Shown: positions 8,217 through 47,683 of the stretch, in pieces
How positions within the stretch are numbered: the first letter of the stretch is position 1
Layout of the letters: the number at the start of each line of letters is the position of its first letter
IMG/VR virus record: IMGVR_UViG_3300034117_001582
Coordinates: 1 to 64,000 of that record
Length of the DNA: 64,000 bases
Strand: one strand, 5' to 3'
The notes under the pieces: generated by a model
Databases searched by the model: none
Told to the model about the DNA's origin: nothing
The model's input: the letters and a program-made list of their open reading frames with translations, nothing else
Translations under genes and position numbers: made by a program

Positions 8217-8303
8217 AATACAAGTATATAGATAACATTTTAATTAATCAAATATAAAAAAATCCTCATTATTATTGTAGATAACCATTTAATTTATCCT
8301 GTA

Positions 8304-8801
8304 TCATATCTTATCTCCCTTTAGTAAATTCTCTTTCGCCCACAACGGTTGTAAATTGGTGTAGTGACACAACTTAATAACCTCATCTTCCATCTTACCT
8401 GATGATATTGGAATAATATGGTCTATGTGCCACTCTCCGTGATTATTCCACGTCATACCCTCTTTAAATAAAGATTCCATATGTGATTTAACCACTGACC
8501 AATCCGCACCTAATATTGTATGTGCTCTTGATTTCTTTGTGTATCCATTTCTACTTAAACCTTTCCTTACACACACTCTCATTATCTGAATGAATCCTGT
8601 CATTGGATCTTCCTTTTCTTTTCTTCTCTTTCTAGCGACTTCATATGATTTCCACCACAAATCAAACACAGGGTCATTTTGTCTTCTTAGTTTGTTTCTT
8701 TGGTATCTAATCTTATTCTCACAGGTCTTACATTGTTTCCTACTATCTCTATAGTTAGACTTAGACTTCGATACGTTACAGGTATTACATACTTTATCCA
8801 T
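8304..8801 (-). CDS. HNH endonuclease with N-terminal Zn-finger
   Basis: two CxxC pairs; WHIDHIIP...HYTNLQPLWAKENLLKG. Confidence 0.85.
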   Translation of the reverse strand: MDKVCNTCNVSKSKSNYRDSRKQCKTCENKIRYQRNKLRRQNDPVFDLWWKSYEVARKRRKEKEDPMTGFIQIMRVCVRKGLSRNGYTKKSRAHTILGADWSVVKSHMESLFKEGMTWNNHGEWHIDHIIPISSGKMEDEVIKLCHYTNLQPLWAKENLLKGDKI

Positions 8802-8869
8802 ACCACAAAGATAAACATAATTTTTATATAAACAAAAAATCCACCACTATTATGTGAATCATATTTATG

Positions 8870-8966
8870 TAGTCAGGACAGGAATCGAACCTGTTATCCC
8901 CCATTTGGATGCCTACTCCACCATCGGTGTCTCGGACTTGGTGCGTTATCCAACACGCCCCTGACT
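8870..8966 (-). ncRNA. tRNA-like RNA with intact acceptor and T arms but an expanded, non-canonical anticodon region
   Basis: AGTCAGG/CCTGACT acceptor; ACAGG-TTCGATT-CCTGT T arm; no 5-bp stem with 7-nt anticodon loop. Confidence 0.7.
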
Positions 8967-8974
8967 ATTTTTTT

Positions 8975-9050
8975 TGGCGGAGATTACGGGAGTCGAACCC
9001 GCTCCGAACGCCGTGACAGGGCGACATCTTAACCATTTGACCTAATCTCC
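8975..9050 (-). tRNA. tRNA-Asp(GUC), CCA encoded
   Basis: cloverleaf, loop CTGTCAC. Confidence 0.92.
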
Positions 9051-9222
9051 AAATTTATCAGTCTTTCCTGATCGTCACCCCTAACCCACAGGTATGAACC
9101 CGTATCGTAGTAAAGCTTGGTTGGCTATTAACACACTCTCAAACATTCTACTTCCCGCGGTACGAAATTTGTATCTTACTTAGCCCACCGTCAGCGGTAT
9201 GGGTACTTGAGTTTATGTGTCG

Positions 9223-9294
9223 TAGTCCCACCGGGAATCGAACCCGACTTTCCAGGATGAAAACCTGACGACCTAACCGATAGTCGATGGGACC
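9223..9294 (-). tRNA. tRNA-Glu(UUC)
   Basis: cloverleaf, loop TTTTCAT. Confidence 0.92.
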
Positions 9295-9367
9295 AAAAAT
9301 AAGGGTAGACACGGGTCTAGCTAGCCATCTTTCAGGAAAGGCCCTTACTAATATTCTACCCTTTTAG

Positions 9368-9440
9368 TTGCGGGAACAGGGCTCGAACCTGTAATCTCGG
9401 CTTATGAGACCGAGCGGATGACCAATTTCCACATCCCGCG
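9368..9440 (-). tRNA. initiator-type tRNA-fMet(CAU)
   Basis: C1:A72 mismatch, purine11:pyrimidine24, loop CTCATAA. Confidence 0.85.
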
Positions 9441-9445
9441 ATATG

Positions 9446-9519
9446 TAGTTAATACTGGACTCGAACCAATGACCTATTCCGTATCAGGGAATCGCTCTAA
9501 CCAACTGAGCTAATTAACT
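9446..9519 (-). tRNA. tRNA-Ile(GAU)
   Basis: cloverleaf, loop CTGATAC. Confidence 0.92.
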
Positions 9520-9594
9520 ATGTCCTCGTCTTTCCGAGATGTCAATAGGGATATTTTGTGTACAATTCAGGACTCTCATATACTTCCTTATTAG

Positions 9595-9667
9595 CACGCC
9601 CGGATGGATTCGAACCACCAACACTTGGTTTTGGAAACCAATGCTCTACCGTTGGAGCTACAGACGT
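9595..9667 (-). tRNA. tRNA-Trp(CCA)
   Basis: cloverleaf, loop TTCCAAA. Confidence 0.92.
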
Positions 9668-9679
9668 GTGTCTTATTTG

Positions 9680-9753
9680 GGTAACTAATGGGAATTGAAC
9701 CCATGGCACAAGGTACCACAAACCTTTGCTCTACCAACTGAGCTATAGTCACC
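9680..9753 (-). tRNA. tRNA-His(GUG)
   Basis: G-1:C73 identity pair, loop TTGTGGT. Confidence 0.92.
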
Positions 9754-9860
9754 ATTTATTTGTAGTTAAGTAGCTGACACACACTCTCGTTTCACCATCT
9801 TATGTCAACAGGTTAATGCACTTTACGAGTTTCCCGTTTCTTACCACCACAATATTTTAA

Positions 9861-9966
9861 TTTCAATGAACTTCTTCTTTCTTCACGGGAGTAGGACACC
9901 AACCTCTCACTTCCTACCCCCGTTGTTTCTCTTACAAAGATATGTAATCACTTTTGATTTGCCAAA
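9861..9966 (-). promoter_or_regulatory. Bacteroidota sigma-A-type promoter with hairpin + boxA-like leader for the tRNA operon
   Basis: TTTG (9966-9963), 20 nt, TATCTTTG (9942-9935); then hairpin ACGGGGGTAGGA...TCCTACTCCCGT and GTTCATTGAAA. Confidence 0.75.
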
Positions 9967-10001
9967 CAATTTGTAAAATATTTTTTATTTTTTTTTAAAA
10001 C

Positions 10002-10031
10002 AAAAAACCCCACTTTTTTGAAGAGGGGTTC
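10002..10031 (-). terminator. intrinsic terminator
   Basis: AACCCC..GGGGTT hairpin with minus-strand U tract. Confidence 0.6.
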
Positions 10032-10070
10032 TAAATGTTTTATTTGTGTTTTTTAATTACCTGATTGTGT

Positions 10071-10478
10071 TCATCTGTAATTATCATCACTTCCATCATC
10101 CATGTCCTCATCGTTCTCAAGACCACGCCATACACTATCATAATCAGGATTATCAGCAAAACCTAATGCTCCACTTTTACTACCTTCTAAATCTCTAATA
10201 TAATTCTTTAAAAGATTAATAACTTGGTCTATCCTTTCTGCTCTTTGTCTTGGACTTACTTTTTTACTCAAACTATGTTGACTTGATAAATATCCAAATT
10301 GTCCTGGTTCAGAAAAAAGATTACCTTCATCCTCTCTAAAGAATATATCATCTAATTTTCTTTCAAAATCTAATTCTTTGTCTTCTTTTTTATTTGATTT
10401 AAATCCATCACCTTCGTTGACAATTCTTCTAACTATACGAGTTAAATCTCTTTCTGTTAATCTCATCACTCTTTTCAT
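10071..10478 (-). CDS. leader-bearing hypothetical protein (MKRVMRLTERDLTRIVRRIVNE)
   Basis: leader nearly identical to that of 53276..53776. Confidence 0.8.
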   Translation of the reverse strand: MKRVMRLTERDLTRIVRRIVNEGDGFKSNKKEDKELDFERKLDDIFFREDEGNLFSEPGQFGYLSSQHSLSKKVSPRQRAERIDQVINLLKNYIRDLEGSKSGALGFADNPDYDSVWRGLENDEDMDDGSDDNYR

Positions 10479-10537
10479 ATTAATAGTTTTATATATAAAT
10501 ATGTCTATTCATGAAAAACGTAATCATTAATGTTTTT

Positions 10538-11035
10538 TTATTTTATTTCAAATGCACATCTCATGATTTTTTTGGTTTTAGTGGCATCTTCAGGGTTTCC
10601 AATTACAACACCATCTTTGATTGTAAACGCATGTCGGTTAACAAGAACAAAGAATGTGCCCTTTGGGTTTTGTTTAACAAATGTCCCCACAGTCATGTTT
10701 CTTTTCTTTGTCTCACCTTTGATTGTTACATCATACATTAATGATCTTAACATTTGGTCATTATGTCTTACCCCAACAGGACAAACCTTTTTACCATTAA
10801 CCTTAAACAAACTGTCACCCATTTTGACAAGTTTGGATACCGTTCCGTATGTACCATTTCTTGGTTTTCTTCCAAATTCATCGGCAACATACCTATGAGC
10901 ATAATCATAAGATACTTCAAATGAGGATGCAAATGCTCTAACAACACAATCATTTCTTTCGCCTTTGGCAGTTGCTGATTCCGCATATCCTTTGATTGCC
11001 GTTCCTGTTGCTTCGTATGGTAGTTTGTTTTTCAT
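10538..11035 (-). CDS. hypothetical protein, possible Cys-His peptidase-like fold
   Basis: NDCVVRA and RHAFTI; start at MKNKL after a TATCTTTG promoter. Confidence 0.6.
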   Translation of the reverse strand: MKNKLPYEATGTAIKGYAESATAKGERNDCVVRAFASSFEVSYDYAHRYVADEFGRKPRNGTYGTVSKLVKMGDSLFKVNGKKVCPVGVRHNDQMLRSLMYDVTIKGETKKRNMTVGTFVKQNPKGTFFVLVNRHAFTIKDGVVIGNPEDATKTKKIMRCAFEIK

Positions 11036-11107
11036 ACTACAAAGATAATAAAAAAAATTGATATAAAAAAAAGGCATTGAAAAAAAATTCAACACCTTTT
11101 TAATAAT

Positions 11108-11178
11108 AAGTTGTGGCGGGACTCAAACCTGCGACACGTCCGAAATCGGATTGCTCTAACCAACTGAGCTACACAACT
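11108..11178 (-). ncRNA. tRNA-like RNA or pseudo-tRNA with collapsed anticodon loop
   Basis: AGTTGTG/CACAACT acceptor, canonical D arm GCTC-AGTTGGTTA-GAGC, anticodon arm TCCG-ATTT-CGGA, T-loop TTTGAGT. Confidence 0.75.
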
Positions 11179-11374
11179 TAATTTTTCGTTTTAAGGTCAC
11201 CCAAAAAACATCATCAATTAACCTAAATTAATTATAGGACTTCTTTTTCAGAAAAGAAAGCGATTTTCTCTTCATATTCAAACATTTCTTTGATAAACTG
11301 AAAATAGTCCTCTGAATTAATAAATTCATAATGTTGTTGTTCAAAAACGTCTTCCATAATTTTAATTTTTTTAG

Positions 11375-11448
11375 TGATTCCGAAAGGATTCGAACCTTTA
11401 ACCCTCGCCTTAGAAGGGCGATGCTCTATCCAGTTGAGCTACGGAACC
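11375..11448 (-). tRNA. tRNA-Arg(UCU)
   Basis: cloverleaf, loop CTTCTAA. Confidence 0.93.
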
Positions 11449-21705: not shown

Positions 21706-22557
21706 TTATGAAAATGGGATTTCTTGTATTTGACCTAACGTTTTAAAATATTCAACTCTTGTTTTGGCAATTTCTACATAATTTGGTGATAACTCAATGC
21801 CCAACCATCTACGACCCAATATCTCTGCAGCCACCAAACTTGTTCCTGATCCAGCAAATGGGTCTAATACTACATCGTTTTTGTAGGACAATATTTTAAT
21901 CGCCTTTGTTGGGATGTCCATTGAGAAGGTCGCCTTGGTGAGTGATTTAGTATCTGCAAAGTAATTCCACTGACCAAACACAAGTTCCATAAACTCTTTC
22001 TTATCTGTCTCTTCATATACAATTTTTTTCTTTAATGACCCATCTTCCTGTTCAATGTCAGTAGGTGTCCCTTTCCACTGAGGTTCTCCTTTAACCTTTT
22101 TAATGTGGTGTTTTTTGTATGCTAAGATTACACACTCCTTAGGATTATAAATGTATGGGCTTGATGGACTCATCCAAGAACCCCAAGCAGTTGTTTTACT
22201 TCGGTGTGGTGATTGTTCCTCAAGGTCGACAATCCCAAAGAACCCATAACCAATTTCTTTCATTATTTGCCACATCTCAGAAACAAAGAAAATTCTTCCA
22301 CCTTTCTTTTGACGATTAATCTCATAGGGTATGTTCAACGCAATTCTTCCATCGTCTTTTAATAATCTATATGCCTCACTTAACCAATTTTTGGCAAACT
22401 CAACATACTCGTTAAATTCAACATCATCCTCATGTACATCGTACGCAATTCCAACACCATAAGGTGGGGATGTTACAATTAAATCCACAGACCCTTCTGG
22501 TAATGTTTTCATTACCTCAACACAATCTCCGTTTATTATTTTTCCTGTTTCTATCAT
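21706..22557 (-). CDS. DNA methyltransferase, N4-C/N6-A beta class
   Basis: TSPPY before DPFAGSGT. Confidence 0.92.
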   Translation of the reverse strand: MIETGKIINGDCVEVMKTLPEGSVDLIVTSPPYGVGIAYDVHEDDVEFNEYVEFAKNWLSEAYRLLKDDGRIALNIPYEINRQKKGGRIFFVSEMWQIMKEIGYGFFGIVDLEEQSPHRSKTTAWGSWMSPSSPYIYNPKECVILAYKKHHIKKVKGEPQWKGTPTDIEQEDGSLKKKIVYEETDKKEFMELVFGQWNYFADTKSLTKATFSMDIPTKAIKILSYKNDVVLDPFAGSGTSLVAAEILGRRWLGIELSPNYVEIAKTRVEYFKTLGQIQEIPFS

Positions 22558-22909: not shown

Positions 22910-23188
22910 TTAGACATTTTTTTCTAAATTATCAATATGGTGTTGAAGATACCACATCGCTTTCTTAAGGTCCTCCAATTCTTTTTCTTTATTTTTCTTT
23001 CCTGCTCTTGAAATATACTTAACCGTATTACCCAAAGAAAATCCTAAGTCCCAAGCATCAATAACCTTGATTGCCTCGTATTCATTATTTTCTCCTCCGT
23101 AATGTTGTGGATGGTTTATTTGTTCTATTTTTGGTGGGGGACACTGACAAAGTCCGGCGCCACCACATATACATTCTTGTTCCATCAT
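22910..23188 (-). CDS. DUF3310 family protein
   Basis: INHPQHY...GNTVKYISRAGKK..EDLKKAMWYL. Confidence 0.88.
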   Translation of the reverse strand: MMEQECICGGAGLCQCPPPKIEQINHPQHYGGENNEYEAIKVIDAWDLGFSLGNTVKYISRAGKKNKEKELEDLKKAMWYLQHHIDNLEKNV

Positions 23189-24312
23189 TCTTCTCTATAT
23201 TCTTTTAACAATTCTTCATTTGACATTGTACCAAACTTCTGATTTAAACCTTCTGTTTTAACATTTTTAGTCATCATATGTTTAACCTCATAGATTTGTT
23301 CGGCAGTATCTAAAGATGTTACAATTTCTTTAATAATTTTATATGGATTGGCATTTGATCCAGGTCTTCTGTCCTCAACATATCCTTTCCATTCTTTTGC
23401 CGTGTCTTGTGGTACACGAATAGACGCTCCACGATCAGACACACCCCAACTGAACGTATCAATCGATTGTGTTTCAAAATCACCAGTAAGTCGTAAATCA
23501 TTATTAGAACCATACGCTTTAATGTGTTCTTGGTGTCTTGACCCAAATGAATTAAATATTGATAAAAAATATTCGTATCCTCCTTTATTTCTCATTCTAT
23601 CATTTGAAAAGTTGGTGTGAAGTCCTGAACCATTCCATTCACCATAAATTAATGGTTTTGGATGAAGCTCAATATGATAACCATATTTTTCAGAAATCTT
23701 ATAAAGGAAATATCTACTCATCCATAAGTCATCCCCACCTTTTAATTTACCTTTTGAAAATACTTGATATTCCCATTGACCTAACGCAACTTCAGCATTT
23801 GTTCCGGTAATGTCAATTTTATGGTCTAAACACACATTTAAATGTTCTTCAACAAAATCACGACCAACCGCATTATGACCAACACCACAATAATATTTTC
23901 CTTGTCCTTCAAGTAATCTTCTATCGTGACCTAAAACATTACCTCCAGTTTCGTTATATATGAAATATTCTTGTTCAAAACCAAACCATAAATCTTCTTG
24001 TTCTTTATTAAGGGGAGCCCTATGATTTGATTTATGTGGTATATTATCAGAATCCATTACCTCACAAAACACATAAAGAACACTTTTTTCTAATGGAAAA
24101 GAATTTGATTTATAGAGTCTAACAGGTTTTAATAAACAATCTGACTTACCTGTCTCTGCCTGATTAGTTGATGACCCATCAAAATTCCATATAGGAAAAT
24201 CTTCAATTTTTAAGGTCTTAATTGATTCGTATTCAACAATCTTAACTTTACTTCTAAGATTTGGCTCCGGTTTATATCCGTCGAGCCACACGTATTCTAA
24301 CACAACTTTCAT
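23185..24312 (-). CDS. glnII: glutamine synthetase, type II
   Basis: EYVWLDG, WNFDGSST, GFEQEY, NAEVALGQWEYQ, WNGSGLHTNFS, DRGASIR, EDRRP. Confidence 0.93.
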   Translation of the reverse strand: MKVVLEYVWLDGYKPEPNLRSKVKIVEYESIKTLKIEDFPIWNFDGSSTNQAETGKSDCLLKPVRLYKSNSFPLEKSVLYVFCEVMDSDNIPHKSNHRAPLNKEQEDLWFGFEQEYFIYNETGGNVLGHDRRLLEGQGKYYCGVGHNAVGRDFVEEHLNVCLDHKIDITGTNAEVALGQWEYQVFSKGKLKGGDDLWMSRYFLYKISEKYGYHIELHPKPLIYGEWNGSGLHTNFSNDRMRNKGGYEYFLSIFNSFGSRHQEHIKAYGSNNDLRLTGDFETQSIDTFSWGVSDRGASIRVPQDTAKEWKGYVEDRRPGSNANPYKIIKEIVTSLDTAEQIYEVKHMMTKNVKTEGLNQKFGTMSNEELLKEYREE

Positions 24313-25431: not shown

Positions 25432-26640
25432 TTAATTATGTCTCATTACGTGATACCATTTATCATTCACCTTAATCTCATTATCGGCACCATCATACCC
25501 ATTAAGAATTTCTCCGTAATCACTGTCTCGTAATATGTCTTCACAAACTCCATCAATATCAACAAATTCTAAAAGATATTTAGAATCAAATCCCATATCT
25601 TCTAAATAACTTGGGAAATCTCTAGAATTTTCTTCAACAAAATTATCTATCACCTCTTCAATTGTGTCCTCATCATAATCCCCTTCAGGGTCTTCTTTAA
25701 TTTCTTCAATAATATCTTCTATACTTGTTATTTCCTCTTCAATTTCTTCAGTTTCTTCATCAGTTAATTCTTCATTTTCCAATTTATAATTTAACCTTTC
25801 TATTTTTTGAGTATAAATTACAACGTACTTTTCTTGTTGTTGTGAAAGTTCTTTTTCTATCCCATAAGCATCTGGGTCATTTCTTACGGCGTCTTCATGA
25901 ATATCATATAACCAACTTCTGACTTGCACCATATCTAAATTATTCTCCCAAACACTTGTTCCAAAGGCTTCATAACCTAAATCTTCAATATCAGATTTAA
26001 TTTTTTCATAAGCCGCTGATTCAATATCATCATCAGAATATACAACCCATTCACTTTCAAACAACGAATCACCTAACCATTCAAACATATGACTATTTCC
26101 ATATCCTCCGTATTTTGTTTTATATATGAAATACTTGTCTTCTTTTACCTCTTCCCCATCTTCATTATCGTATGTTCCAATCTCCCTATTTTGGGATAAA
26201 TGGTTATATAACGCTTCGGTTTCATATGAAATATCATCACCATTATTTATGTCCCATTCTTTATTTTCTCTATATTCTTGGAGTTCATTTAATTTTTCTT
26301 TTAGTATTTTTTTTCTTTCGATTTGATACATCGTACTAGCCCAATAGTTTAATCTACCCTTAACTTTATTTTTATCAAAATATGTTATATTTGTGTATCC
26401 AATATCTAAATCCCCGTCAACATAATCAATACTATCAATGTTTGATACCGTTTTATTACTACTCAAGTCTAATTTACCGGTAATTTTAATTTTCTTACCT
26501 CTATAATCAGGTAACCGTTTAATTAATGCTCCGTCACCATTAACGTATTTTAATAAATCGATATAATCTTCAGGTGCGATATCAACCCACTCTTCTGACT
26601 GTTCTAATACCATATTTTTAATAATATTTTTTATTGACAT
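25432..26640 (-). CDS. acidic leader-bearing hypothetical protein
   Basis: start MSIKNIIKNMVLEQ after TATTTAT. Confidence 0.75.
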   Translation of the reverse strand: MSIKNIIKNMVLEQSEEWVDIAPEDYIDLLKYVNGDGALIKRLPDYRGKKIKITGKLDLSSNKTVSNIDSIDYVDGDLDIGYTNITYFDKNKVKGRLNYWASTMYQIERKKILKEKLNELQEYRENKEWDINNGDDISYETEALYNHLSQNREIGTYDNEDGEEVKEDKYFIYKTKYGGYGNSHMFEWLGDSLFESEWVVYSDDDIESAAYEKIKSDIEDLGYEAFGTSVWENNLDMVQVRSWLYDIHEDAVRNDPDAYGIEKELSQQQEKYVVIYTQKIERLNYKLENEELTDEETEEIEEEITSIEDIIEEIKEDPEGDYDEDTIEEVIDNFVEENSRDFPSYLEDMGFDSKYLLEFVDIDGVCEDILRDSDYGEILNGYDGADNEIKVNDKWYHVMRHN

Positions 26641-26727
26641 ATAATATAAATACTTTCCATTTACAAATGATACTTTTATAGTTATCAAATATTTATATAA
26701 CAAATAAACTTATTAAAATTTTTAATC

Positions 26728-26862
26728 ATGGGATGCGGATGTAAAAAAGGTCAAGAAACAACACAACCACAACAACCAGCTCAAACACAACAACAACAAA
26801 ATAATGAGACGGTAAAACAAGCGGTTACAAAAATTGTAGAGAAATATTACAAGAAGAAATAA
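26728..26862 (+). CDS. 44-aa peptide MGCGCKK..., Gln-rich (not in ORF track)
   Basis: clean ORF with upstream TATTTAT. Confidence 0.7.
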   Translation: MGCGCKKGQETTQPQQPAQTQQQQNNETVKQAVTKIVEKYYKKK

Positions 26863-26936
26863 TAATTTTGTTTAAGTGTTTAACTTAAAATATATTTTCA
26901 ATAGTATTAATAAAAATAAACACTAATAAAAACAAA

Positions 26937-27818
26937 ATGAATTATATTGAATTCTATAATTTTTTAGATGGTAAGAATCTATGTAACATATTTGCAAACC
27001 TGATCGTAAAAGAAATTAACAATAAACTTCCTGACGCTAAAACTGATATTTCGGTAATTAACGTCAGGAATTTTTTTATTGTAAAAGGTACAACAACATA
27101 TAACGAAGTAATAAACTTAGCCGAGTTATTTCAAAATTACTTAAAAAAATATGATACGGAACTATCTAATAAAGTAAGAGTTATTGATTCTATACTATAT
27201 AACAAAGTGGTCGACCAAGAACCATTAAACCTTAAAGAGGTTTTTATTAAATCACAAGAAAAAAAATACCAATCCCTACAACAAAAATTAAATAAGTACA
27301 CCGAAGAAAAAGTGTATTTTAATTTTAAATTACAAGAAAGAACTAATCACGTTTATTATGATTGTTCATCAGAACAACTTTCAACCGTCATTACTATTTT
27401 AGAAGAACAATTCCCTGAATACGTTTTAGTAAAATCTGATTTTTCACAAGAAATTTATATATCAGATAAAGTATACGGATTATCAAATAATAACAGACTA
27501 TACCATTTCCTATTGTGGTCAATTAAAAATCACATATTTGAACTTGGAATTAGTAAAAAATTAGATGTGTCCTTATATTCTGACGTTAATATTAATGAAA
27601 TGAATAATTTAACCGTTAATTTTGTTTTACATAATGATAATCATATTGTTAAAACAGAATGGTTAGAGTCGTTAGTTTTAGATGTGTTCCCATTTGATGT
27701 TGAGTCACTAAACACTAAATTTGGAGATATAGAAGATTTAGAAGAACTTATAATGGGTACCGATGAATCATACCCATTTAAACAATTAAGTTACTTAAAC
27801 GACTTTATTTTACTTTAA
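26937..27818 (+). CDS. degenerate S-adenosylmethionine synthetase (MetK)-fold protein
   Basis: by-eye gapless pattern match to MetK N- and C-terminal domains; catalytic HPD and E absent. Confidence 0.55.
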   Translation: [293 protein letters not shown]

Positions 27819-28097
27819 AAGGTAGTCTTTAACTAACTCCACCCCTTCAAATATGTCTTGGTAGTCTCTATCAGGTGCAAGTAATTTAACATTATGAGCA
27901 TTATCACTGTCATCTAAAGTTAATAACATTAATGCTGGAACATATTCATTTTCAACAACTTTCACAAACTCATCATACTCCTCTTCGTATTCTTGAATAT
28001 CTCTTTCAATGAATGTTATTTTATTTTTTTTAAGTTCTTCTTTGATATGTACACAATGTGGACAACCTTTCATTGTGTAGACTACTGCAATTTTCAT
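27810..28097 (-). CDS. glutaredoxin-like protein
   Basis: YTMKGCPHC, YVP. Confidence 0.88.
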   Translation of the reverse strand: MKIAVVYTMKGCPHCVHIKEELKKNKITFIERDIQEYEEEYDEFVKVVENEYVPALMLLTLDDSDNAHNVKLLAPDRDYQDIFEGVELVKDYLLK

Positions 28098-28459: not shown

Positions 28460-30238
28460 TTACGGTAGTAAATCTTCAAAGTCTAAATTAGGTTCTACCG
28501 GTATACCCATAGGTCTGTAGTCATTCCAATTAGGTAATTCATCTTGCCAATAAGATAACTCAGGAGTATATGTATCCCAATGTGGTACCATAGAAATTAT
28601 TTTTGACCCATTAACCTCGGTCTCGTTATCAAATGTTGCCCGTTGTTCAATCTCTTTACCACTACGATATTTTTTAATCATCTTTGGTAGTTTTAAAGTT
28701 CCCGACTTATACATCAAATTGATATTTGCCAATTGTATTTTAGCAACATGTGAAAACTCAACTGATGGTGTTTCATTAAACTTTGCTCTTTCTTGGACAT
28801 TCAATATCTCATTTTTTCTATATTGGTATTCCACAGTAATTCTTTCATCGCTATCTGTTGATTCTTTACGGATTGAGAATATCAAACAATCTGGTCTTTC
28901 TGAATAACTACGAACACAATTTCGTTGGTGTTGTGATTCTTTTTCATAATCCATAGTTTTACGAAGAAGTACCGGGTAATATGTTTCTCCTTCGTGTTCG
29001 ATAGGTGTTTCTAAACTATCTACATCACCATAGAATCGTTCAACCTCACCTTTTCTATATGATTGTAAAAGACGACTAAACTCTTCGTGTTCTAAATTAA
29101 AACTACTGATGTTTGTGAACTTGAATTTTACATCTTCACCAAGATTTAATAAATCCCTTTTCATATCTAAATGGTCAAGTAATATTGACCACTTATTATG
29201 TCCGTAAAAGTATTTTATCAAGTCTAAAATTCTATCTTTTTCTTTTGAAGTTAAAGGTGTTGACATTCTATTATGTTGGTATTGATTATATTGATCATAA
29301 AAACATTCAAAAAATCTTCCCATTTTATTATCCTCTATTGGTATGCCGATTTCGTCGTTGCTATAATACTCGTAAAAGTATTTATTTTCAATTTTATTAA
29401 ATCTATCAATACCCAAAAGGTTGTAAGTCATATTCAATTTATCAAAGTCAACCCAATCCATTTCATTAAAAATCTGTTTAACTTTGGATCCTTTGAGTTT
29501 TAGTTTATCCATCGCGGTATCAACTAAGTTCATATCAAACTTCTTCAATTCTTTTTTAGAAAAGAATGTGCCTGTGAATTTTCTCCAATTGTTTGGGATT
29601 TTAATACCATTAACCAAATAGTAAGTTAAACTATAAAAAGACCTCATGCAATCCCACTGAAAGTTTTGTGGGTTTTCAATTCCCATTCTATCCCAAATCT
29701 TTTCTAAGAAAAAATAAAGATACTGGTCTACTTTAACACTTTCATCAATTATAAGATTTCTTAAAAAACTTTCAATTGCAAAATATGTTGGGTTTACCTT
29801 CATACTGCCCCCAATAACTTTCTTTTTTTTAGTGGAGAATGTTCCTGAATAAAACATTTTCTTTTTGAAATTGAAGGTAAGGTAGTTTGTGGACTTTCTT
29901 TCTGAGAAGTACTTGGACCCTACACCTCTACTTTTTCGGTGAGTCTGAAATTTTATTGATATCTTATCATCGCCTTCTTCTATAAATAATCTTTGTCTAT
30001 TAAAATTAACTGTAGCACATGGATTTCCAAAATTTTTAACAAAATCTTCTTCTGTAAAACATTGGGTATCAGAAAAAAATCTGTCCCCATTTTTGGTAAC
30101 ATATAAGTTTAGTAAATTTTTATATCCAAGACTATTTGTGTCTTTTTGAGATATGTTGCAAAAATTATGATATAGTTCAGTCCTATAACTTTTTTTCTCA
30201 ACTAACTTATGAAATGTTTTACCTTCTACTTCTAACAT
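28460..30238 (-). CDS. PcfJ-domain protein
   Basis: ESQHQRNCVRSY...IFSIR...TVE...Q.RAKFN. Confidence 0.75.
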   Translation of the reverse strand: MLEVEGKTFHKLVEKKSYRTELYHNFCNISQKDTNSLGYKNLLNLYVTKNGDRFFSDTQCFTEEDFVKNFGNPCATVNFNRQRLFIEEGDDKISIKFQTHRKSRGVGSKYFSERKSTNYLTFNFKKKMFYSGTFSTKKKKVIGGSMKVNPTYFAIESFLRNLIIDESVKVDQYLYFFLEKIWDRMGIENPQNFQWDCMRSFYSLTYYLVNGIKIPNNWRKFTGTFFSKKELKKFDMNLVDTAMDKLKLKGSKVKQIFNEMDWVDFDKLNMTYNLLGIDRFNKIENKYFYEYYSNDEIGIPIEDNKMGRFFECFYDQYNQYQHNRMSTPLTSKEKDRILDLIKYFYGHNKWSILLDHLDMKRDLLNLGEDVKFKFTNISSFNLEHEEFSRLLQSYRKGEVERFYGDVDSLETPIEHEGETYYPVLLRKTMDYEKESQHQRNCVRSYSERPDCLIFSIRKESTDSDERITVEYQYRKNEILNVQERAKFNETPSVEFSHVAKIQLANINLMYKSGTLKLPKMIKKYRSGKEIEQRATFDNETEVNGSKIISMVPHWDTYTPELSYWQDELPNWNDYRPMGIPVEPNLDFEDLLP

Positions 30239-30251
30239 AAAACAAAGATAC

Positions 30252-30280
30252 AAAAAACCCCCGACTTATTCAACCGGGGG
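30252..30280 (-). terminator. intrinsic terminator
   Basis: CCCCCG..CGGGGG with minus-strand U tract. Confidence 0.65.
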
Positions 30281-30622: not shown

Positions 30623-31990
30623 TTAAACAAATAAATGTACTTCATCCGTGTCTACTCTTGCTTGTAAACTTACTGGAATAGCGTTTTGATTACTTCCCTT
30701 AATGTTAACAACTGAAAGTCTTGGCATACTACCAATACATTCCGGTAGTCTTTGTAAATTAGGGTTTTCAGGTAACGACAAGAATTGTAATTTTTGTAAG
30801 TTACAAATAGTGTCAGGTATGGAAGCGACACAACCAACCAAGTGGATTGCTGTTAATTCTCTAAAATTACCTATGGATGCCGGAATATTTAAATCTAATT
30901 TTGATCCTGACTTAGCAATAAACTCAAGTCTTTGGATTGTTTCTGGTAAAGTTTCAAAGAATTCATCGAATCCGTAAAGTGCAATAAATTTAGATGAAGA
31001 ATCTCCAGGGTAGTTAACCGTCACCTTTTTACCTTCATTCGCAGTTAAACCTTTCATGAATTGTGGTTTGAAATATTCTTTCATCCCTTCTTCATTAGTA
31101 TTTAAGAAATCAACCAAATCAATTTGTCTATCCGATGGATCCATATACTGATTTGATGGGAAGTGGAATTGGTAACGAAGTGCCGGAAGTCCAGAAACAT
31201 CACCATATTCTTTATCTCCTGTATGTTTTTGACCTTTGTTTGGAATAACAACATATAATGGTCCGTCTTTAATATAACGGTCAAACCAAGTTAAACCAGG
31301 TGATGATGTACACCATCTAGTTTCACCTTTACCCGGCTCTTGATATGAACCACCATAAAAACATGCAGCATCCTTACCCAATTGGCCTTTGTCCTCAATC
31401 TTAACGATAGTCCAATCTTGTCCACGATAAACAACATCACCACCTGGATGTTGGTATGTTTTTGATGCTTCTTTTTTCTCGTCTTTAGTTGCTTTAGTTT
31501 TATCTAAACTGAAGTCTTTAACTTGGTCGTATAAAGTTGCTGGTGTTAATTTATTGATGTCTCTTGCCTCTTGTGGTAAACGATTCTTAAATCTTTCAAA
31601 TTTTTGTAAATCACCAGTAACTTTATATAAATCCTCCAAGAACAAATCTTGGAATTGCTTTAAAGCTGATTTATATTGACCTGATTTTGGATCAGAAACC
31701 TTTAATGGGTGGTCAGCAGGTAAAGACGGCATTGTAAAGTTTTTCAATATCCATTGAGCATATTTACCAATCTTAACATTTTCCATGTCTTCAGGTCTAA
31801 GTTCATCAATATCTTTTCCTTCAGGGAATCTTGATGTAGGGTCAGCAGCAATTATAGCCACTAACGTTTCGAAAGGTAACAACCCTTTTGAACCCTTTTC
31901 TTTTGGTTTTACAAATTTGTCGAATAAAACTTGAAATCTTGAACTCTCAATAATTAAGTCTTTAAGTATGCTGGTAAATCGAATAGCCAT
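30623..31990 (-). CDS. leader-bearing protein with TRWCT domain and C-terminal leucine-rich repeats
   Basis: IPASIGNFREL / IPDTICNLQKLQFLSL / LPECIGSMPRL. Confidence 0.8.
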   Translation of the reverse strand: MAIRFTSILKDLIIESSRFQVLFDKFVKPKEKGSKGLLPFETLVAIIAADPTSRFPEGKDIDELRPEDMENVKIGKYAQWILKNFTMPSLPADHPLKVSDPKSGQYKSALKQFQDLFLEDLYKVTGDLQKFERFKNRLPQEARDINKLTPATLYDQVKDFSLDKTKATKDEKKEASKTYQHPGGDVVYRGQDWTIVKIEDKGQLGKDAACFYGGSYQEPGKGETRWCTSSPGLTWFDRYIKDGPLYVVIPNKGQKHTGDKEYGDVSGLPALRYQFHFPSNQYMDPSDRQIDLVDFLNTNEEGMKEYFKPQFMKGLTANEGKKVTVNYPGDSSSKFIALYGFDEFFETLPETIQRLEFIAKSGSKLDLNIPASIGNFRELTAIHLVGCVASIPDTICNLQKLQFLSLPENPNLQRLPECIGSMPRLSVVNIKGSNQNAIPVSLQARVDTDEVHLFV

Positions 31991-32040: not shown

Positions 32041-32880
32041 TTAGTAGTTCATTATTAATAGTTCTTCACCCATATTTTGTTTTGTTCCTTTTTTTGCTGC
32101 CGCCGCTTTAGCAAACTCTTTCTTTTCCCAACGATATTGTTCTTCAGGGAACCATTCATGTAATAACTCAAAATCGTAGTAAGATAAACTAAACTTACCT
32201 TTAATATTGTGTAGAACGTTTGCAAGTCTTTCATGGTCTTCTCTGTCGAAGTCATGGTTATTGTAATAGTTTTCCGTTTTCCAATATGGTGGGTCCAAAT
32301 AAATATATGTTGTTGGTGAGTCATACTTTGCAATCACATCTGCAAAGTCCATATTCTCAACCTCAGTTATTTTCAAGAAATGTTCAACCCATTCAGGTTT
32401 AGACAACTTGTCTCTAAATGTAAGGTACTTTGATTTGTATTTACCTTTTAAGTCAATGAATGAACTGGTTTCAGGTTTACTACCACTAAATACTTGTGTT
32501 AACACATAAGCATACTTTGCAGCCACATCATAATTGCCAGGTTCTACGCTGAAATTTTCAGCAAATATTTCAGCCTGAAACCTTACAAACTGTTCTTTAT
32601 ATATAGATGGCGTGATATCCTCACCAAATTGTTGACATGGTATAGCATTAATCGATTCCAATAGTCTTTCAGGATTCTTGACACATTGAAATAAATTATA
32701 GTTAAGTGGGTTGAAGTCGTTATAGACAACTTTCTTAAGATTTGCGAATAGTTTTAAGTCCATGTTAAAGAAACACCAAAACATACCTCCAAATGTTTCT
32801 ACGTATGTTTCCATATCCTCAGGATAGAAAGGGACTATCCACTTTCCAATTTTACTCTTACCTCCAATGTATGATAGCAT
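32041..32880 (-). CDS. dam: DNA adenine methyltransferase (Dam/D12 class)
   Basis: YIGGKS, ETFGG, DPPY. Confidence 0.88.
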   Translation of the reverse strand: MLSYIGGKSKIGKWIVPFYPEDMETYVETFGGMFWCFFNMDLKLFANLKKVVYNDFNPLNYNLFQCVKNPERLLESINAIPCQQFGEDITPSIYKEQFVRFQAEIFAENFSVEPGNYDVAAKYAYVLTQVFSGSKPETSSFIDLKGKYKSKYLTFRDKLSKPEWVEHFLKITEVENMDFADVIAKYDSPTTYIYLDPPYWKTENYYNNHDFDREDHERLANVLHNIKGKFSLSYYDFELLHEWFPEEQYRWEKKEFAKAAAAKKGTKQNMGEELLIMNY

Positions 32881-32955: not shown

Positions 32956-33117
32956 ATGGAAAAAAAAGAAGCAACACAAGTAACAGGATGTAAACAATGT
33001 CAAAAAGGTTTAAGTACCACACAAAAAGGTTTAGTTGTGCTATCTATGTATATTTTAGGTACATCGGTCTTTGGGACTATTGAATTAATCAAATATTTAG
33101 TTGAATTCCTTAAGTAA
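32956..33117 (+). CDS. small membrane protein with CxxC
   Basis: GCKQCQ + TM; upstream TATTTAT. Confidence 0.6.
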
Positions 33118-34092
33118 TTCTTCTAATTTTTGTTGAACCTCATCGGGTAACTCATATTCATTTGTTACCGCAACTTTTATGTAGAAATCACCACTACCGT
33201 CGTTTGCTCTATACCCCTTCTTAAGTAATCTTAATGGTTTTTCAGTGTTCAAATTTCTTGGTATATTAATCATTAAATCACCATCAGGATGAGGTACTAA
33301 AATTTGTTTTTTAGTTAACACATCTATTGCTGTTATTTTTTTATAATATATTAAATCCATCCCAATTTTTTCAAAGTCATCAACTTTATTCACCTCAACC
33401 TTTAAAATTAAATCCCCCCTTAGTCTTACACCAGGATTATAATCCCCCTTCCCTGCAACACGCATAAAGTTACCATTGTCCACATTTTTAGGAATACTAA
33501 CCACCAAATTTTCTGTTTTTTTAATTTTACCGTGACCACCACAAGAAATGCAAGGTTTAGATATGATTGTACCATTACCCATACAAGTAGGACAATTGGT
33601 TTGGTAAACTTGTTGGAACATTCCTGTCCCTACCTTTTGCATAATAAATCCCTGACCATTACAATTATTACAAACACTTCTTTCACCACCACTACTGTCA
33701 CATGGTTTACAATGGTCAAAATACTCATATTTAATATCTTTTTTAATACCACCATACGACTCAATAGGGGTTATTGATACCGTCATAATCTTATCGGGAG
33801 CCATTGGTTTGTGTTGTTGTCTTTGTCCTCCCATCATCTGTTCAAACACCGAACTGAAATCAAAAGAATCTCCACCCATACCCGCAAATGGGTTATTTTT
33901 TTTATTATCGTAGTCCCTTCTTTTATTTTCATCACCTATACCTTCATAGGCCTCAGCAACTTCTTTAAATTTTTCTTCTCCGTTTGGGTTTACATCGGGA
34001 TGGTATTGCTTACTTAATTGTCTATAGGCCTTTTTAATTTCGTCCTGAGTGGCGGTTTCAGAAACACCCAATATATTATAATAATTTTTCAT
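33097..34092 (-). CDS. dnaJ: DnaJ chaperone
   Basis: J domain with HPD, CxxCxGxG repeats, C-terminal domain. Confidence 0.95.
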
Positions 34093-41957: not shown

Positions 41958-42773
41958 TTACATGTATTCAAATAAATCTGAACATTCGTTTCTTAATTTA
42001 CGAAGTGCTTTTTCTTTGATTTGACGAACACGTTCCTTAGTTAAAGAAAAGTCAGACCCAATATCTTCTAATGTACGTGGTGTTCCTGTGATACCGTAAT
42101 AATCCTCAACAATCGCACGTTCTCTGTCATCAAGAACAGACATAATACCCATCATCTTTTCTTTTAGTATGTCCTGTGTTGAAAATACTTCGTCAGGTGA
42201 GTCCACATTTTCATTTTTGATAATATCAATTAAAGTATCACCATCCTCATTGATGTGCATATCCAAGTCAATCATTCTTGGTAGGTTTGCAAACTTATCC
42301 GACAAATCTTTATTTGTTTTTTCGTTTTCACGTTTTTCTTTTTGCATATCCTGAACAACATTAACCGGAAGTCGGATAGTGCGTGAATTATCGTTTAGTG
42401 ATTGTAGAATTGATTGTTTAATCCACCATACCGCATATGAAATGAATCGGTTTTTCTTTGTCCAATCAAAGTTTTTAATCGCCTTCATTAATCCAAAGTT
42501 CCCTTCAGCAATTAAATCAGATAAATCAACACCTTGATTTTGATATTGTTTTGCCACTGTGATAACAAAACGTAAGTTACCCTCAAGCATTTCTTTTTGA
42601 ATTGCATCTTTTTCACGTTGTGAACAATCTTCCGAAGCGATTCTTTCGCCTAAGGCCCGTTCTCTCTCGGGTGTCATAACTTTTAATTTTCTAATGTCCT
42701 TTAAATAAAATTGGATTTCATCCTGATTTAAAGGGTTAGTTGATTTAATCTCTCCCATTTTGTCTTTTTCCAT
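41958..42773 (-). CDS. RNA polymerase sigma-70 family factor (RpoD/SigA-like, no region 1.1)
   Basis: NLRFVITVAKQY, DLIAEGNFGL, FISYAVWWIKQ, TLEDIG..TKERVRQI. Confidence 0.95.
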   Translation of the reverse strand: MEKDKMGEIKSTNPLNQDEIQFYLKDIRKLKVMTPERERALGERIASEDCSQREKDAIQKEMLEGNLRFVITVAKQYQNQGVDLSDLIAEGNFGLMKAIKNFDWTKKNRFISYAVWWIKQSILQSLNDNSRTIRLPVNVVQDMQKEKRENEKTNKDLSDKFANLPRMIDLDMHINEDGDTLIDIIKNENVDSPDEVFSTQDILKEKMMGIMSVLDDRERAIVEDYYGITGTPRTLEDIGSDFSLTKERVRQIKEKALRKLRNECSDLFEYM

Positions 42774-43931: not shown

Positions 43932-44741
43932 TTAACTTTCCAAAGAATCTAATGTAATTTTTATTCTTTCGTTACATATATCAACATATTCTTGTGAAAT
44001 TTCACTACCAATGTAGTCTCTATTCATTAAAATGCACATTTTAGCAACAGTACCTGACCCGATAAATGGGTCATAAATTAAATCACCTTTATTAGTCCAT
44101 GTATTAATATGGTCTCTAACCAACTCTTCAGGAAAAATTGCTGGATGTTTGTGAGCTATCTTATCTTTAGATGCAAATCCACCACCATTAACGTACCTCC
44201 AAATATTATTTCTTGGACTAAAATTAGGAACAGGTTTAATGTCACCAACCTCAACTAATTGTTCATTTTCACCAATACGTTTGGTGTTTTTACCCCAATT
44301 TGTATGACCAGCCCATTTATTTGGTTTATCACATATTAGGTTAGATGTTTTGGGTTTACCCTTTGAGAATACAAACATATACTCAAATATTTGAGTATAT
44401 CTATTACTTTTAGCGCTGGCAGGGTATGAACTTGAATTTTTTTCATAAATCATAGTATCATGTAATAAAAATCCTGCATCCATAAATTTTAACGCTTGTC
44501 TAAAACTTGTTCCTGATTCAGAACCTTTAATTACTTGGTCATTAACCACCCAAACTACCACACCACCTTTCTTAGTGGTTCGGTATAGTTCGGGAGCTAA
44601 CGTATCTATATCAAATGAAAATCCATTATATTTTCTAATGTCATCATAGGGTGGAGATGTTATCACCATATCATAGTAATCATCAGACATCTTAGACAAA
44701 GTCTCTAAGTTATCTTCTAAATAAATTTGATTTTTTTCCAT
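43932..44741 (-). CDS. DNA methyltransferase, N4-C/N6-A beta class
   Basis: TSPPY, HPAIFP, DPFIGSGT. Confidence 0.92.
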   Translation of the reverse strand: MEKNQIYLEDNLETLSKMSDDYYDMVITSPPYDDIRKYNGFSFDIDTLAPELYRTTKKGGVVVWVVNDQVIKGSESGTSFRQALKFMDAGFLLHDTMIYEKNSSSYPASAKSNRYTQIFEYMFVFSKGKPKTSNLICDKPNKWAGHTNWGKNTKRIGENEQLVEVGDIKPVPNFSPRNNIWRYVNGGGFASKDKIAHKHPAIFPEELVRDHINTWTNKGDLIYDPFIGSGTVAKMCILMNRDYIGSEISQEYVDICNERIKITLDSLES

Positions 44742-45334: not shown

Positions 45335-47683
45335 TCAATTGGTTACCAATTTACTTAAAACTTTTGAAATATTATTTTCTTTGGTAATCTTAACCGTAGA
45401 ATCCGCCCATTGCGAAACTAAGGTCGAGTGAGTTATAACGAAGATTTTTTCAAAATAGTCTTTAATCTTAACAAAAAATTCATAAACCATATCCAAGTTG
45501 TCATTACTAATTTTTCCAAACACCTCATCAAAAATAATCACGTTTGGTTTTGACAAACTACATATCTTACTTAGTACCGATCTCAACGCCAAAGACGCTA
45601 TTGTCTTCTCGTACCCCGAACCTGAAACCATTAACTTTTCAACACCCGAACTATTATCAACCATTATAAATTCAACCTCATTCTTATCGTTAATTCTGAT
45701 TTCCAATTTGAAATAACAAGAGTCCTCCATTAATCTTTGAAGTTCGGAGTTGATTAATGGCATCATCGTTTTCATAATGATTTTTGATACCCCATTCTTT
45801 CCGTAAGCCTCCAAATAGATTTTATAAATCTTTTCTTTTTCTTCCTCTTCTTTGATTTTAACAATCAATTTTTTATTATTTGAAATCTTCTCTTCTTTAG
45901 ATTTGATTTCATATTCATTGGTGGTTATAGCATTGTTTTTAGTTCTTTTCATACCATCCAATTCGTCTAATCTTAAATCAGCCTTAATTAACATTGAGTC
46001 AATTTGTTGGTTCTGTTTAATCTTATCTTGTATTTCTTCGTATCGTTTTAACTTATCTTTTAACACCCCCATCTTTAAATCACAAGATTCAATTGATAGT
46101 TCGTATTTTTCTTTAATGAGTTTGTTTTTTTCATACTCATCAAACTCTTTTTTAAGTTGTACAAATGCTTGTTCTTTGCCTGTTAAAACCTGCATTAACC
46201 TTTCTTTTTGGTCTTTATGCGTAATATAACCATCAAGTTCGGCAATCTTTGCATTTGTAATTGAAGCATTCATTAACTCAATTCCACAGTGTTCACATTT
46301 AATTCCGCCCTCAACAGAAGATTTTAACTTATTGATTGATGTAATTTCAGTATCGATTCTTACAACATCTTTATAAACAACATTATACTCTTCTTTAATT
46401 TTATCGTGTTCCTCTTCTTTGTAAAACTCCGAAGGTTCAACGACTTTTAGTTCATTCATTTTTGTTACAAATCCAGACTTATTATAGTCAATACCTTTAA
46501 TTTCTTCTTCAGTATTTTCGGGATTAAGTATCGAAATTTCTTGGTCAATGTCAGAGTGTTTTTTCTTCAATATGTCATCACGATATTCTTTTCCTTTTGA
46601 TATCTTTTCATCAATCTCAACAAGTTCTTTTTTAATGTCGTCAATCTGTGTGGTTAACTCACCAATTTTAGTATTTAAATCCTCGTTATCGGTTTTTAGT
46701 TGTTCAGATGAATATACATTAGACATCTTTGACTTTGAAAACTCAGAATACACTTCTTTTGCTGTTTCTTCTTTTGTTTTTAAAAACTCCAATCCCATAA
46801 ATCTTGAAAGTACCTGACCTCTAGCGGTTGGTTTTGCATCCAATAATTCTTCAAGGTTTGTTGCCGTTGTAAGAATGGTCATCAGGAAGTCTTCTTTGGT
46901 ACCAATAGACGTTTTAATGAACGCTTCGGTCTCTCTTCGTTGTTCTCCTTGAAAATTCTGTAAACTACCGTCAGATAGCTTCTTAAAGAAGTCTAACTCC
47001 GTTTTAACATTCCAATCGCCCTTTTTAGATGACTTACGTTCAATAGTTCTAATAATAATATAATCTTCACCATCAATTGTAACCTCACCCTTAACCGTAA
47101 CTTTATCCTTGTCGGTAAATCTGTTGAATATCTCTTCAGCCTTTGTTGTCTTTGTCGTTTCATTAAAAAATAAGAACATCAACAAATCGACAGACAATAC
47201 CGTTTTACCACCAAAGTTTGGTGGGTTTGACTCGATAACCACAATACCATTTAGACTATCAAAATCTAATCTTTGGTTTTCTCCATATGATAAGAAATTG
47301 GAAAATTCTATATTTCGAATATACCACTTTTTAAATTGTGTGGATTCTTCTTGTTTTTCGAGCATTTTATTTTCAACCATTCGATTGATTAATAAAATAT
47401 TTTCGTGATAGTTCCCATAACCTTTTGATTCTAAAAACTTTTTAAGAAGTTCCAACTGGTAGTTTGCGTCCGAAATGTTAACAGAAACATCAATACTTTG
47501 CATTGTGTCTTTCTCAACATTTTTAACTTTTGTTAAGACATTCACATTAGTGGTATTATACTTTTTTTGAAAGTAATGTTTAACACTTTTGAGTTTATCT
47601 TGTGTAAAGTTTTCCGGCAAATCTTCCCAAACAACTTGAATAGTTGGGTTTTCAAACTTAGAAAAATCCAATCCTTTAATCAT
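45335..47683 (-). CDS. sbcC: SbcC/Rad50/gp46-like SMC ATPase
   Basis: NFLSYG, Walker A NFGGKT, CEHC zinc hook, GSGYEK signature, IFDE, ITH. Confidence 0.92.
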   Translation of the reverse strand: MIKGLDFSKFENPTIQVVWEDLPENFTQDKLKSVKHYFQKKYNTTNVNVLTKVKNVEKDTMQSIDVSVNISDANYQLELLKKFLESKGYGNYHENILLINRMVENKMLEKQEESTQFKKWYIRNIEFSNFLSYGENQRLDFDSLNGIVVIESNPPNFGGKTVLSVDLLMFLFFNETTKTTKAEEIFNRFTDKDKVTVKGEVTIDGEDYIIIRTIERKSSKKGDWNVKTELDFFKKLSDGSLQNFQGEQRRETEAFIKTSIGTKEDFLMTILTTATNLEELLDAKPTARGQVLSRFMGLEFLKTKEETAKEVYSEFSKSKMSNVYSSEQLKTDNEDLNTKIGELTTQIDDIKKELVEIDEKISKGKEYRDDILKKKHSDIDQEISILNPENTEEEIKGIDYNKSGFVTKMNELKVVEPSEFYKEEEHDKIKEEYNVVYKDVVRIDTEITSINKLKSSVEGGIKCEHCGIELMNASITNAKIAELDGYITHKDQKERLMQVLTGKEQAFVQLKKEFDEYEKNKLIKEKYELSIESCDLKMGVLKDKLKRYEEIQDKIKQNQQIDSMLIKADLRLDELDGMKRTKNNAITTNEYEIKSKEEKISNNKKLIVKIKEEEEKEKIYKIYLEAYGKNGVSKIIMKTMMPLINSELQRLMEDSCYFKLEIRINDKNEVEFIMVDNSSGVEKLMVSGSGYEKTIASLALRSVLSKICSLSKPNVIIFDEVFGKISNDNLDMVYEFFVKIKDYFEKIFVITHSTLVSQWADSTVKITKENNISKVLSKLVTN

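Follow-up and report, generated by a model that had tools for sequence, protein, structure and literature searches.

What use would a phage have for a protein with the architecture of S-adenosylmethionine (SAM) synthetase, MetK, from which the active site has been cut away? The question is raised by a gene in the 64,000-nucleotide stretch analysed here (the window), which covers the first 64 kb of an IMG/VR virus record (IMGVR_UViG_3300034117_001582) that is 291,867 bp long and roughly 99 % complete. The window is AT-rich (about 30 % GC), and the phage has been seen repeatedly in lake-water metagenomes, 2020-2024.

26937..27818, + strand: ATG-initiated open reading frame (ORF) for a MetK-derived pseudoenzyme of 293 aa (P0001)

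The gene occurs in a single copy in the 291,867-bp genome; its position is exactly that given in the initial annotation, and both peptide segments quoted there are found in it. That annotation had proposed a catalytically dead protein of MetK fold, and on this point fold models, profile homology and the loss of all catalytic motifs agree. As for what the protein does, we lean, on balance, towards a MetK-descended, loop-excised pseudoenzyme that would have a non-catalytic binding or scaffold role.

Relationship to MetK

The likeness to MetK had been noticed by eye, and the MetK segment quoted for it is genuine E. coli sequence (residues 17-58). Taken alone, that alignment is insignificant, with about 6 identities in 42 positions, and pairwise BLASTP against E. 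coli MetK gives E values of at least 4.5, in unrelated registers. As a single query, P0001 retrieves nothing useful from Pfam, PHROGs, the PDB (phmmer) or NCBIfam, or by tblastn against 50,697 phage records. With single-sequence searches blank and the pairwise comparison insignificant, the by-eye alignment could not be validated on its own, and it is the family-level evidence that settles the relationship. A hidden Markov model (HMM) of 48 family members, searched against 177,635 distinct PDB sequences, gives 35 matches at E <= 10, every one of them a SAM synthetase (best 7.9e-4), and these are collinear, the family N-terminus falling on MetK 16-95 and the C-terminus on MetK 265-372. A profile of 83 sequences behaves in the same way (best E 5e-4) and, aligned by hhalign with E. 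coli MetK and four phage MetKs, reaches an E value of 8e-6 and a probability of 84 % over 263 columns (the 48-sequence profile, 2.4e-4). Both HMMER and hhalign reproduce the register first drawn by eye, which sets K13-N14-L15-C16-N17 on D-K-I-A/C-D and R187 on the DRS arginine. Weak, sub-threshold Pfam matches among the 48 members are to S-AdoMet_synt_C (PF02773, 21/48) and S-AdoMet_synt_N (PF00438, 7), no unrelated Pfam family being matched by more than two of them.

Could the similarity be spurious, arising from a chance ORF or from convergent or compositional resemblance in an AT-rich genome? The insignificant pairwise similarity speaks for it, as does the AT-richness of the organisms (Cryptosporidium, Ureaplasma) whose methionine adenosyltransferases (MATs) are the best sequence matches, a hint that composition helps to some extent. 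Nevertheless, this explanation is effectively refuted already and has practically no chance of being right, and homology to MetK, with a MAT fold, can be taken as close to certain. An archaeal-type MAT or another SAM enzyme was also considered and rejected, as no such family appears among the Pfam matches of the 48 members and the genome has no radical-SAM gene. Homology does not amount to membership, however: the curated thresholds of PF00438, PF02772, PF02773 and TIGR01034 are not reached by the family, a short-form member scoring 19.8 bits against TIGR01034 (metK; cut-off 309.4) and P0001 giving no match to it. Being so far below the Pfam and TIGRFAM cut-offs, the protein is a homologue of the enzyme family, not a member of it.

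The structural models lead to the same place. Built on the family alignment, the AlphaFold2 model (predicted local distance difference test score, pLDDT, 95.1; predicted template modelling score, pTM, 0.91) consists of three beta-alpha-beta-beta-alpha-beta repeats, the three intertwined domains of the MAT fold. Foldseek finds 168 PDB matches at E <= 0.001, and all 50 of the 50 listed are MATs, with E values down to 3e-14; the ESM Atlas gives a template modelling (TM) score of 0.78 to a MAT cluster, and nearly all named AFDB cluster matches are MATs. The unrelated fold that the initial annotation had named as its possible undoing is clearly not what the AlphaFold2 model, Foldseek and the ESM Atlas return. 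SecD and reverse transcriptase (RT) came up as structural neighbours of a poor single-sequence ESM Atlas model (pLDDT 0.38) and were discarded as meaningless, and an ESM Atlas feature search with P0001 was blank. Compared with bacterial MetK (E. coli; PDB 1xra, 7r2w and 8bb1 chain A), the model has the same three-repeat intertwined alpha/beta fold, collinear and with 285 of the 293 residues superposed, although the phage protein is about 90 residues shorter and only 9-13 % identical in structural alignments.

Loss of the active site

Has any of the ancestral chemistry been retained? Positions of E. coli MetK, whose catalytic and ligand roles are those of the MetK structural literature, were mapped through hhalign, and the residues found there were tabulated across the 48 family members. 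Three loops are missing: MetK ~98-124 (the gating loop with Gln98, and GAGDQG with Asp118) is deleted after Y88, MetK ~232-246 (the GGPxGDxGLTGRK loop, with Asp238, Arg244 and Lys245) after residue 173, and MetK ~257-269 (the Gly-rich GGGAFSGKDPS triphosphate loop, with Lys265) after S183. The GHPDK motif is lost, His14 being D11 (D, Y, S or N in the family) and Asp16 being K13 (K in 28/48). Glu42 of the K+ site is replaced by S39 (S, T, K, E or Q in the family) and the methionine-binding Glu55 by T52 (K, F, I, V, E or T); the Lys165 position holds a K in just 12 of the 48 members, that of Phe230, which stacks on adenine, holds I, P, V or T, Lys269 has become N in 24 of the 48, and Asp271 is N in P0001 and E in 24/48. 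In a control alignment of canonical MetKs, four of them phage-encoded, all mapped catalytic positions are invariant. Within the family, the positions aligned to MetK catalytic residues have a mean entropy of 2.9 bits, the average over the whole protein being 2.4.

The hhalign mapping therefore bears out what had been noted from the sequence, namely that the HPD, E and GKD residues are absent and the middle is shortened. Unlike bacterial MetK, the family lacks the HPD, GAGDQG, GGPxGDxGLTGRK and GGGAFSGKD motifs, does not keep the catalytic positions and has an unconserved dimer face. Because three active-site loops have been excised and the remaining catalytic and substrate positions replaced, the protein should, as its sequence indicates, be unable to make SAM or to bind ATP, methionine or SAM in the manner of MetK. 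As every catalytic sequence feature of a MAT is missing while the homology is clear, it is described here as a pseudoenzyme, and we hold it to be highly probable that it is not a SAM synthetase.

Anatomy and conservation of the family

What has been kept, on the other hand, is the scaffold, although not evenly along its three repeats.

26937..27221, + strand: repeat 1 (aa 1-95), equivalent to the MetK 'central' domain, from secondary structure, HMMER and hhalign
27222..27446, + strand: repeat 2 (aa 96-170), compacted counterpart of the MetK 'N-terminal' domain, with high column entropy and gaps
27447..27815, + strand: repeat 3 and C-terminal helices (aa 171-293), equivalent to the MetK C-terminal domain, from hhalign, HMMER, weak PF02773 matches of 21 of the 48 members and a weak TIGR01034 match of a short form

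Repeat 1, which ends at Y88, is the most conserved part (8 % of its sites are polymorphic among 119 close relatives) and carries GKNLCN as a relic of GHPDKICD and FFIVKGxTS as a relic of the GEITT strand. In repeat 3, S176-D177-x-x-Y-G181-x-S183 is the relic of DTYGG, flanked by deletions (of the GGPxGDxGLTGRK loop before it and of the GGGAFSGKDPS loop after S183), and an EWLxSLILDxFxF motif is present. Altogether, the conserved motifs of these two repeats are GKNLCNxxANxIV, TxIxVxN, NFFIVKGxTS, VIDLIxY, SDxxYGxS, EWLxSLILDxFxF and a W...ILx tail, and many of the family motifs are recognisable relics of structural motifs of MetK: DKICDQ (here KNLCN), the GEITT strand, DTYGG (here DxxYG), the FDLRP-type C-terminal helix and PWE (here the W/F tail). 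Repeat 2 is variable and, in short-form relatives, dispensable: 11 of the 48 aligned members retain only 14-39 residues of it, and it is missing altogether from about a quarter of the long-form alignment and from most newly found relatives. The abundant short form of 240 aa gives a confident model (pLDDT 88.7) made of repeat 1, one strand, a loop and repeat 3, and that model still matches MetK (E 6e-9).

Near-invariant in the pooled alignment of 83 sequences are N17, I38, F46, G51, T53, D84, Y88, S176, G181, S245, D249 and F251, and S183 is invariant within the short-form alignment. The near-invariant positions are monomorphic in 119 near-identical population variants, save for one variant at D84. 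In the alignment, the polar ones among them are no more than a few residues away from the old HPD site or one of the three deletion scars, places that in MetK converge on the active site.

Spread and selection

Is this a working gene, or the remains of one? The identical protein is present on 14 contigs; P0001 is matched by 343 clusters (90 % identity) and 88 representatives (50 % identity), and a profile of the most divergent members adds a further 257 clusters. A locus search with P0001 alone gave near-identical contigs only. The ratio of nonsynonymous to synonymous substitution (dN/dS) is 0.07-0.12 against relatives at dS 0.12-0.55, so that the gene is under strong purifying selection. In four independent lake metatranscriptome assemblies there are low-depth contigs over 26740-27275, and in one of the four also over 27650-27800. 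The gene is thus under selection and functional, and it belongs, in single copy, to the core gene set of one clade of uncultured freshwater jumbo phages; its product is very probably a functional protein.

A possible function without catalysis

In the mechanism that we favour, a MetK/MAT ancestor would have kept its rigid three-repeat scaffold, lost its three active-site loops and come to work as a non-catalytic binding or scaffold module. Its working surface would most likely be the strictly conserved polar cluster of repeats 1 and 3 (N17, T53, D84, Y88, S176, D177, G181, S183 and K/R187), which would lie where the deleted active-site loops once emerged, the sheet face used by MetK for dimerisation being a less likely candidate. 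That binding occurs through this vestigial-site patch rather than through canonical MetK pairing is, judging from the alignments, a tentative proposal to which we give somewhat less than an even chance.

Several points weigh against this account. Its positive part is inference only, and the clustering of the polar residues is deduced from their alignment to positions flanking the MetK active site. The same residues could be structural stitches that close the deletion scars. Between hhalign runs the register near aa 172-183 moves by one residue, which leaves the pseudoenzyme conclusion unchanged. The evidence of transcription is weak, since the contigs are of low depth and RNA libraries may carry DNA.

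A dead homologue might instead pair with host MetK as a poison or a regulatory subunit, lowering or retuning the SAM supply and thereby, for instance, blunting type I restriction-modification (R-M) or BREX. In favour of this, the protein is truly homologous to MetK and resembles it in overall shape, a canonical MetK is missing from the phage genome, and both protomers of a MetK dimer contribute to its active sites, which suits the poison-subunit version. Pseudoenzymes often regulate their active paralogues by hetero-oligomerisation, as the trypanosome S-adenosylmethionine decarboxylase (AdoMetDC) prozyme does, which also favours such pairing. Phages are moreover known to target MetK: the T3 SAM lyase binds and inhibits it, thereby evading BREX (bioRxiv 10.1101/2023.02.27.530186). 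The structural matches of our model include the MetK chain of PDB 8bb1. However, a protein imitating a conserved surface would be expected to conserve that surface too, and here the face matching the very conserved MetK dimer interface is not conserved: on the strands defined by DSSP in the model, the helix-facing positions are hydrophobic and conserved, while the alternate positions, on the flat face that serves dimerisation and catalysis in MetK, are polar and have an entropy of about 3 bits. In many members, moreover, one of the three repeats contributing to that face is gone, and the two features together would argue against a MetK-type dimer. Besides, pre-existing MetK dimers are stable, which makes them poor targets, as a poison subunit would act on newly made enzyme only. 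The phage has, furthermore, its own need for SAM, as the window contains, just as initially noted, three methyltransferases.

21706-22557, - strand: DNA methyltransferase
32041-32880, - strand: DNA methyltransferase
43932-44741, - strand: DNA methyltransferase (two of the three genes are of the N6_N4_Mtase class and one of the D12/Dam class)

Three such enzymes in 23 kb imply heavy self-methylation and a high SAM demand, so that depletion would hurt the phage. Co-folding of the family alignment with Swiss-Prot METK_ECOLI returned 'no answer' (score 0.00) and, with no paired alignment and E. coli not being the host, counts neither way. All in all, we regard pairing with host MetK as rather unlikely. 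The initial annotation had suggested poisoning or retuning of host MetK, SAM binding and anti-restriction as what the protein might do; the dead MetK fold on which it built these suggestions stands, but in their simplest forms they are somewhat disfavoured by the lost ligand residues, the variable dimer face, the short forms and the phage's own methyltransferases.

The polar cluster could also be read as a pocket, in which SAM, methionine, adenosine, ATP or a related metabolite would be bound and thus sequestered or sensed. It is strictly conserved beside the former active site in long and short forms alike, and the DxxYG relic of DTYGG is kept. Nonetheless, the residues that presumably contact adenine, methionine and triphosphate in MetK (Glu55, Gln98, Asp118, Phe230, Asp238 and Lys165/245/265/269) are all deleted or unconserved, which makes SAM sequestration unlikely, and the MetK site needs two protomers, whereas no conserved dimer face is seen. 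A sponge or sensor of this kind is very improbable.

Alternatively, the conserved Asp, Ser, Thr, Tyr and Lys residues could support a different catalysis on the MetK scaffold. D84, S176, D177, T53, Y88 and K/R187 are near-invariant across sequences 17-50 % identical, and the strong purifying selection would fit as well. Against this, similarity to any other enzyme family was not found in Pfam, PHROGs, Foldseek PDB, AFDB clusters or NCBIfam, none of the deep pocket-forming loops is left, the conserved residues coincide with the deletion scars, as a structural role would have it, and beyond generic synteny there are no co-conserved metabolic partner genes pointing to a pathway. A new enzymatic activity is accordingly improbable. 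Nucleic-acid binding was considered as well and set aside as unlikely, the family being acidic (median pI 5.0).

Relation to known systems

Canonical MetK genes occur in 138 phage records (e.g., Streptococcus phage Javan405 and Staphylococcus phage UPMK_1); their products share 46-63 % identity with E. coli MetK and retain all catalytic motifs, so that they presumably make SAM. Both are MetK-derived phage genes, but the present family lacks those motifs and gives no tblastn match to them. With the T3 SAM lyase (gp0.3) there may be a functional analogy only, in that both would be phage proteins directed at the SAM supply, in the T3 case to evade SAM-dependent defence; the T3 enzyme is catalytic and has an unrelated fold, and its chain is absent from our structural matches, which in the case of 8bb1 are to the MetK chain alone. 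The concept of a non-catalytic subunit modulating an enzyme of SAM metabolism might likewise be shared with the trypanosomatid AdoMetDC prozyme, a dead paralogue of its target, and with MAT2B (PDB 9qpo/4ktt), a regulatory subunit with a Rossmann-type fold. Yet the prozyme belongs to another enzyme family and MAT2B has a different fold, and heteromerisation defines both. Among viral structure models, the same truncated fold is found only in UniProt A0A6J5L9B3 of BFVD (E 3e-7), an uncharacterised and shorter protein (208 aa) of an uncultured Caudovirales phage that may, to judge from the model, belong to the short-form branch of the family.

In the literature searched, no description of a catalytically dead MetK homologue was found, phages included, and the family is not represented in Pfam, PHROGs or NCBIfam. 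What is new here is a loop-deleted, non-catalytic branch of the MAT superfamily that includes two-repeat forms. MetK is among the most conserved enzymes known, and a large, strongly selected dead family of it is confined to uncultured jumbo phages; the forms lacking a third of the fold offer a natural experiment that tells how much of the MAT scaffold can be dispensed with. As one JGI record labels a family member 'S-adenosylmethionine synthetase', 'MetK-like, non-catalytic' should be the annotation of the family: even if its function turned out to have nothing to do with SAM, this would keep it from being counted wrongly among viral auxiliary metabolic genes. The family may also represent a new type of phage-host interface built around SAM, the cofactor required by BREX and type I R-M defences. 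The boldest version, which we consider unlikely, is that of a first viral MetK pseudoenzyme acting on the SAM economy of the host, either engaging host MetK (inhibiting it, or reprogramming it to channel SAM to the three phage methyltransferases) or binding a SAM-pathway metabolite through the vestigial patch, possibly together with the MGCGCK micro-protein described below. If true, it would represent a new principle of counter-defence or host takeover, in which a decayed copy of a host housekeeping enzyme is used as a weapon.

Genomic neighbourhood

Together with a micro-ORF, the MetK-like gene forms a small + strand island among neighbours that are almost all on the - strand.

26728..26862, + strand: conserved micro-ORF (44 aa; N-terminal MGCGCK, C-terminal VEKYYxKK), immediate upstream neighbour of the MetK-like gene
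27810..28097, - strand: glutaredoxin gene (Pfam PF00462)
28460-30253, - strand: PcfJ-like protein of 597 aa, syntenic with the MetK-like gene in distant relatives
30623-31990, - strand: 455-aa protein with a C-terminal leucine-rich repeat (LRR), likewise syntenic in distant relatives

The same block surrounds the gene in members down to about 20 % identity. It starts on the - strand with an N6/N4 DNA methyltransferase, DUF3310 and further genes, goes on with the + strand island (the micro-ORF, an ORF of ~325 aa in some lineages, and the MetK-like gene) and continues on the - strand with glutaredoxin, thioredoxin, an ORF of ~110 aa, a PcfJ-like protein of ~550-600 aa, an ORF of ~95 aa, an LRR protein and a Dam-class methyltransferase. 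The island is thus embedded in a conserved block whose genes are of the host-takeover and auxiliary kind, and this arrangement is the generic synteny of one jumbo-phage clade and not a specific operonic link. The glutaredoxin gene is convergent with the MetK-like gene, their 3' ends overlapping by 9 nt, and this tail-to-tail arrangement is kept family-wide (loci L007-L013 and L030-L036 of relatives), as context not shown to be functional.

The micro-protein family is 40-53 aa long, with an invariant MGCGCK (a CxC motif), a low-complexity linker rich in Q, T and N, and VEKYYxKK. It has no family match in the family libraries searched (NCBIfam included), its motif occurs once in the phage genome, and it is covered by RNA-library contigs in all four lake metatranscriptomes examined. 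It is found beside the MetK-like gene in five divergent lineages, at the following positions in some of them.

L007:4813-4935: micro-ORF
L010:51-191: micro-ORF
L011:550-389, - strand: micro-ORF
L019:3688-3777 and 3798-3926: micro-ORF, in tandem

As it lies on the opposite strand in one lineage (L011/L012; in L019/L020 it is tandemly duplicated), adjacency is conserved and co-transcription is not. A partnership between the micro-protein and the MetK-like protein is possible but unproven. The acidic ORF of ~325 aa found between the two on the + strand in some lineages (L007:4994-5962, L030:3952-4938) has no homologue in this window and no family match. A scan for promoters and terminators around the MetK-like gene found 13 against 13.8 expected in shuffled sequence, and no terminators.

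A metatranscriptome contig of one RNA run (X15) passes directly from 26318 to 28018; the 1,699 nt that it leaves out hold the micro-ORF and the MetK-like gene as well as part of the glutaredoxin gene. An assembly artefact or a relative is the probable source, as the shorter side measures only 24 nt at a likeness setting of 90 %, and the contig could also mark a variant without the + strand island.

The remaining recognisable genes of the window are as follows.

23185-24312, - strand: glutamine synthetase (Gln-synt_N and Gln-synt_C)
33097-34092, - strand: full-length DnaJ (J, CXXCXGXG and C-terminal domains)
41958-42773, - strand: sigma-70 family factor (regions 1.2, 2 and 4)
45335-47755, - strand: SbcC-like ATPase
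49018-49797, - strand: Metallophos (SbcD-like) partner of the SbcC-like ATPase
52272-53189, - strand: DnaG-like primase
7675-11448, - strand: eight tRNA genes, Met (two), Asp, Glu, Ile, Trp, His and Arg(TCT)
6651-7487, + strand: likely endolysin (PG_binding_1 and glycoside hydrolase 19), one of the few other + strand genes

The DnaJ, sigma-70, SbcC/SbcD-like and primase genes are those of host takeover and replication; DnaJ is about 27 % identical to proteins of scattered proteobacterial metagenome-assembled genomes. The glutamine synthetase gene lies near the conserved block, and its relatives in the phage collection are only metagenomic 'huge phage' genomes of 634-735 kb (LR756501-3, LR745206; 44-55 % identity), the glutamine synthetase and a glycosyltransferase of this phage matching only other huge or jumbo phages.
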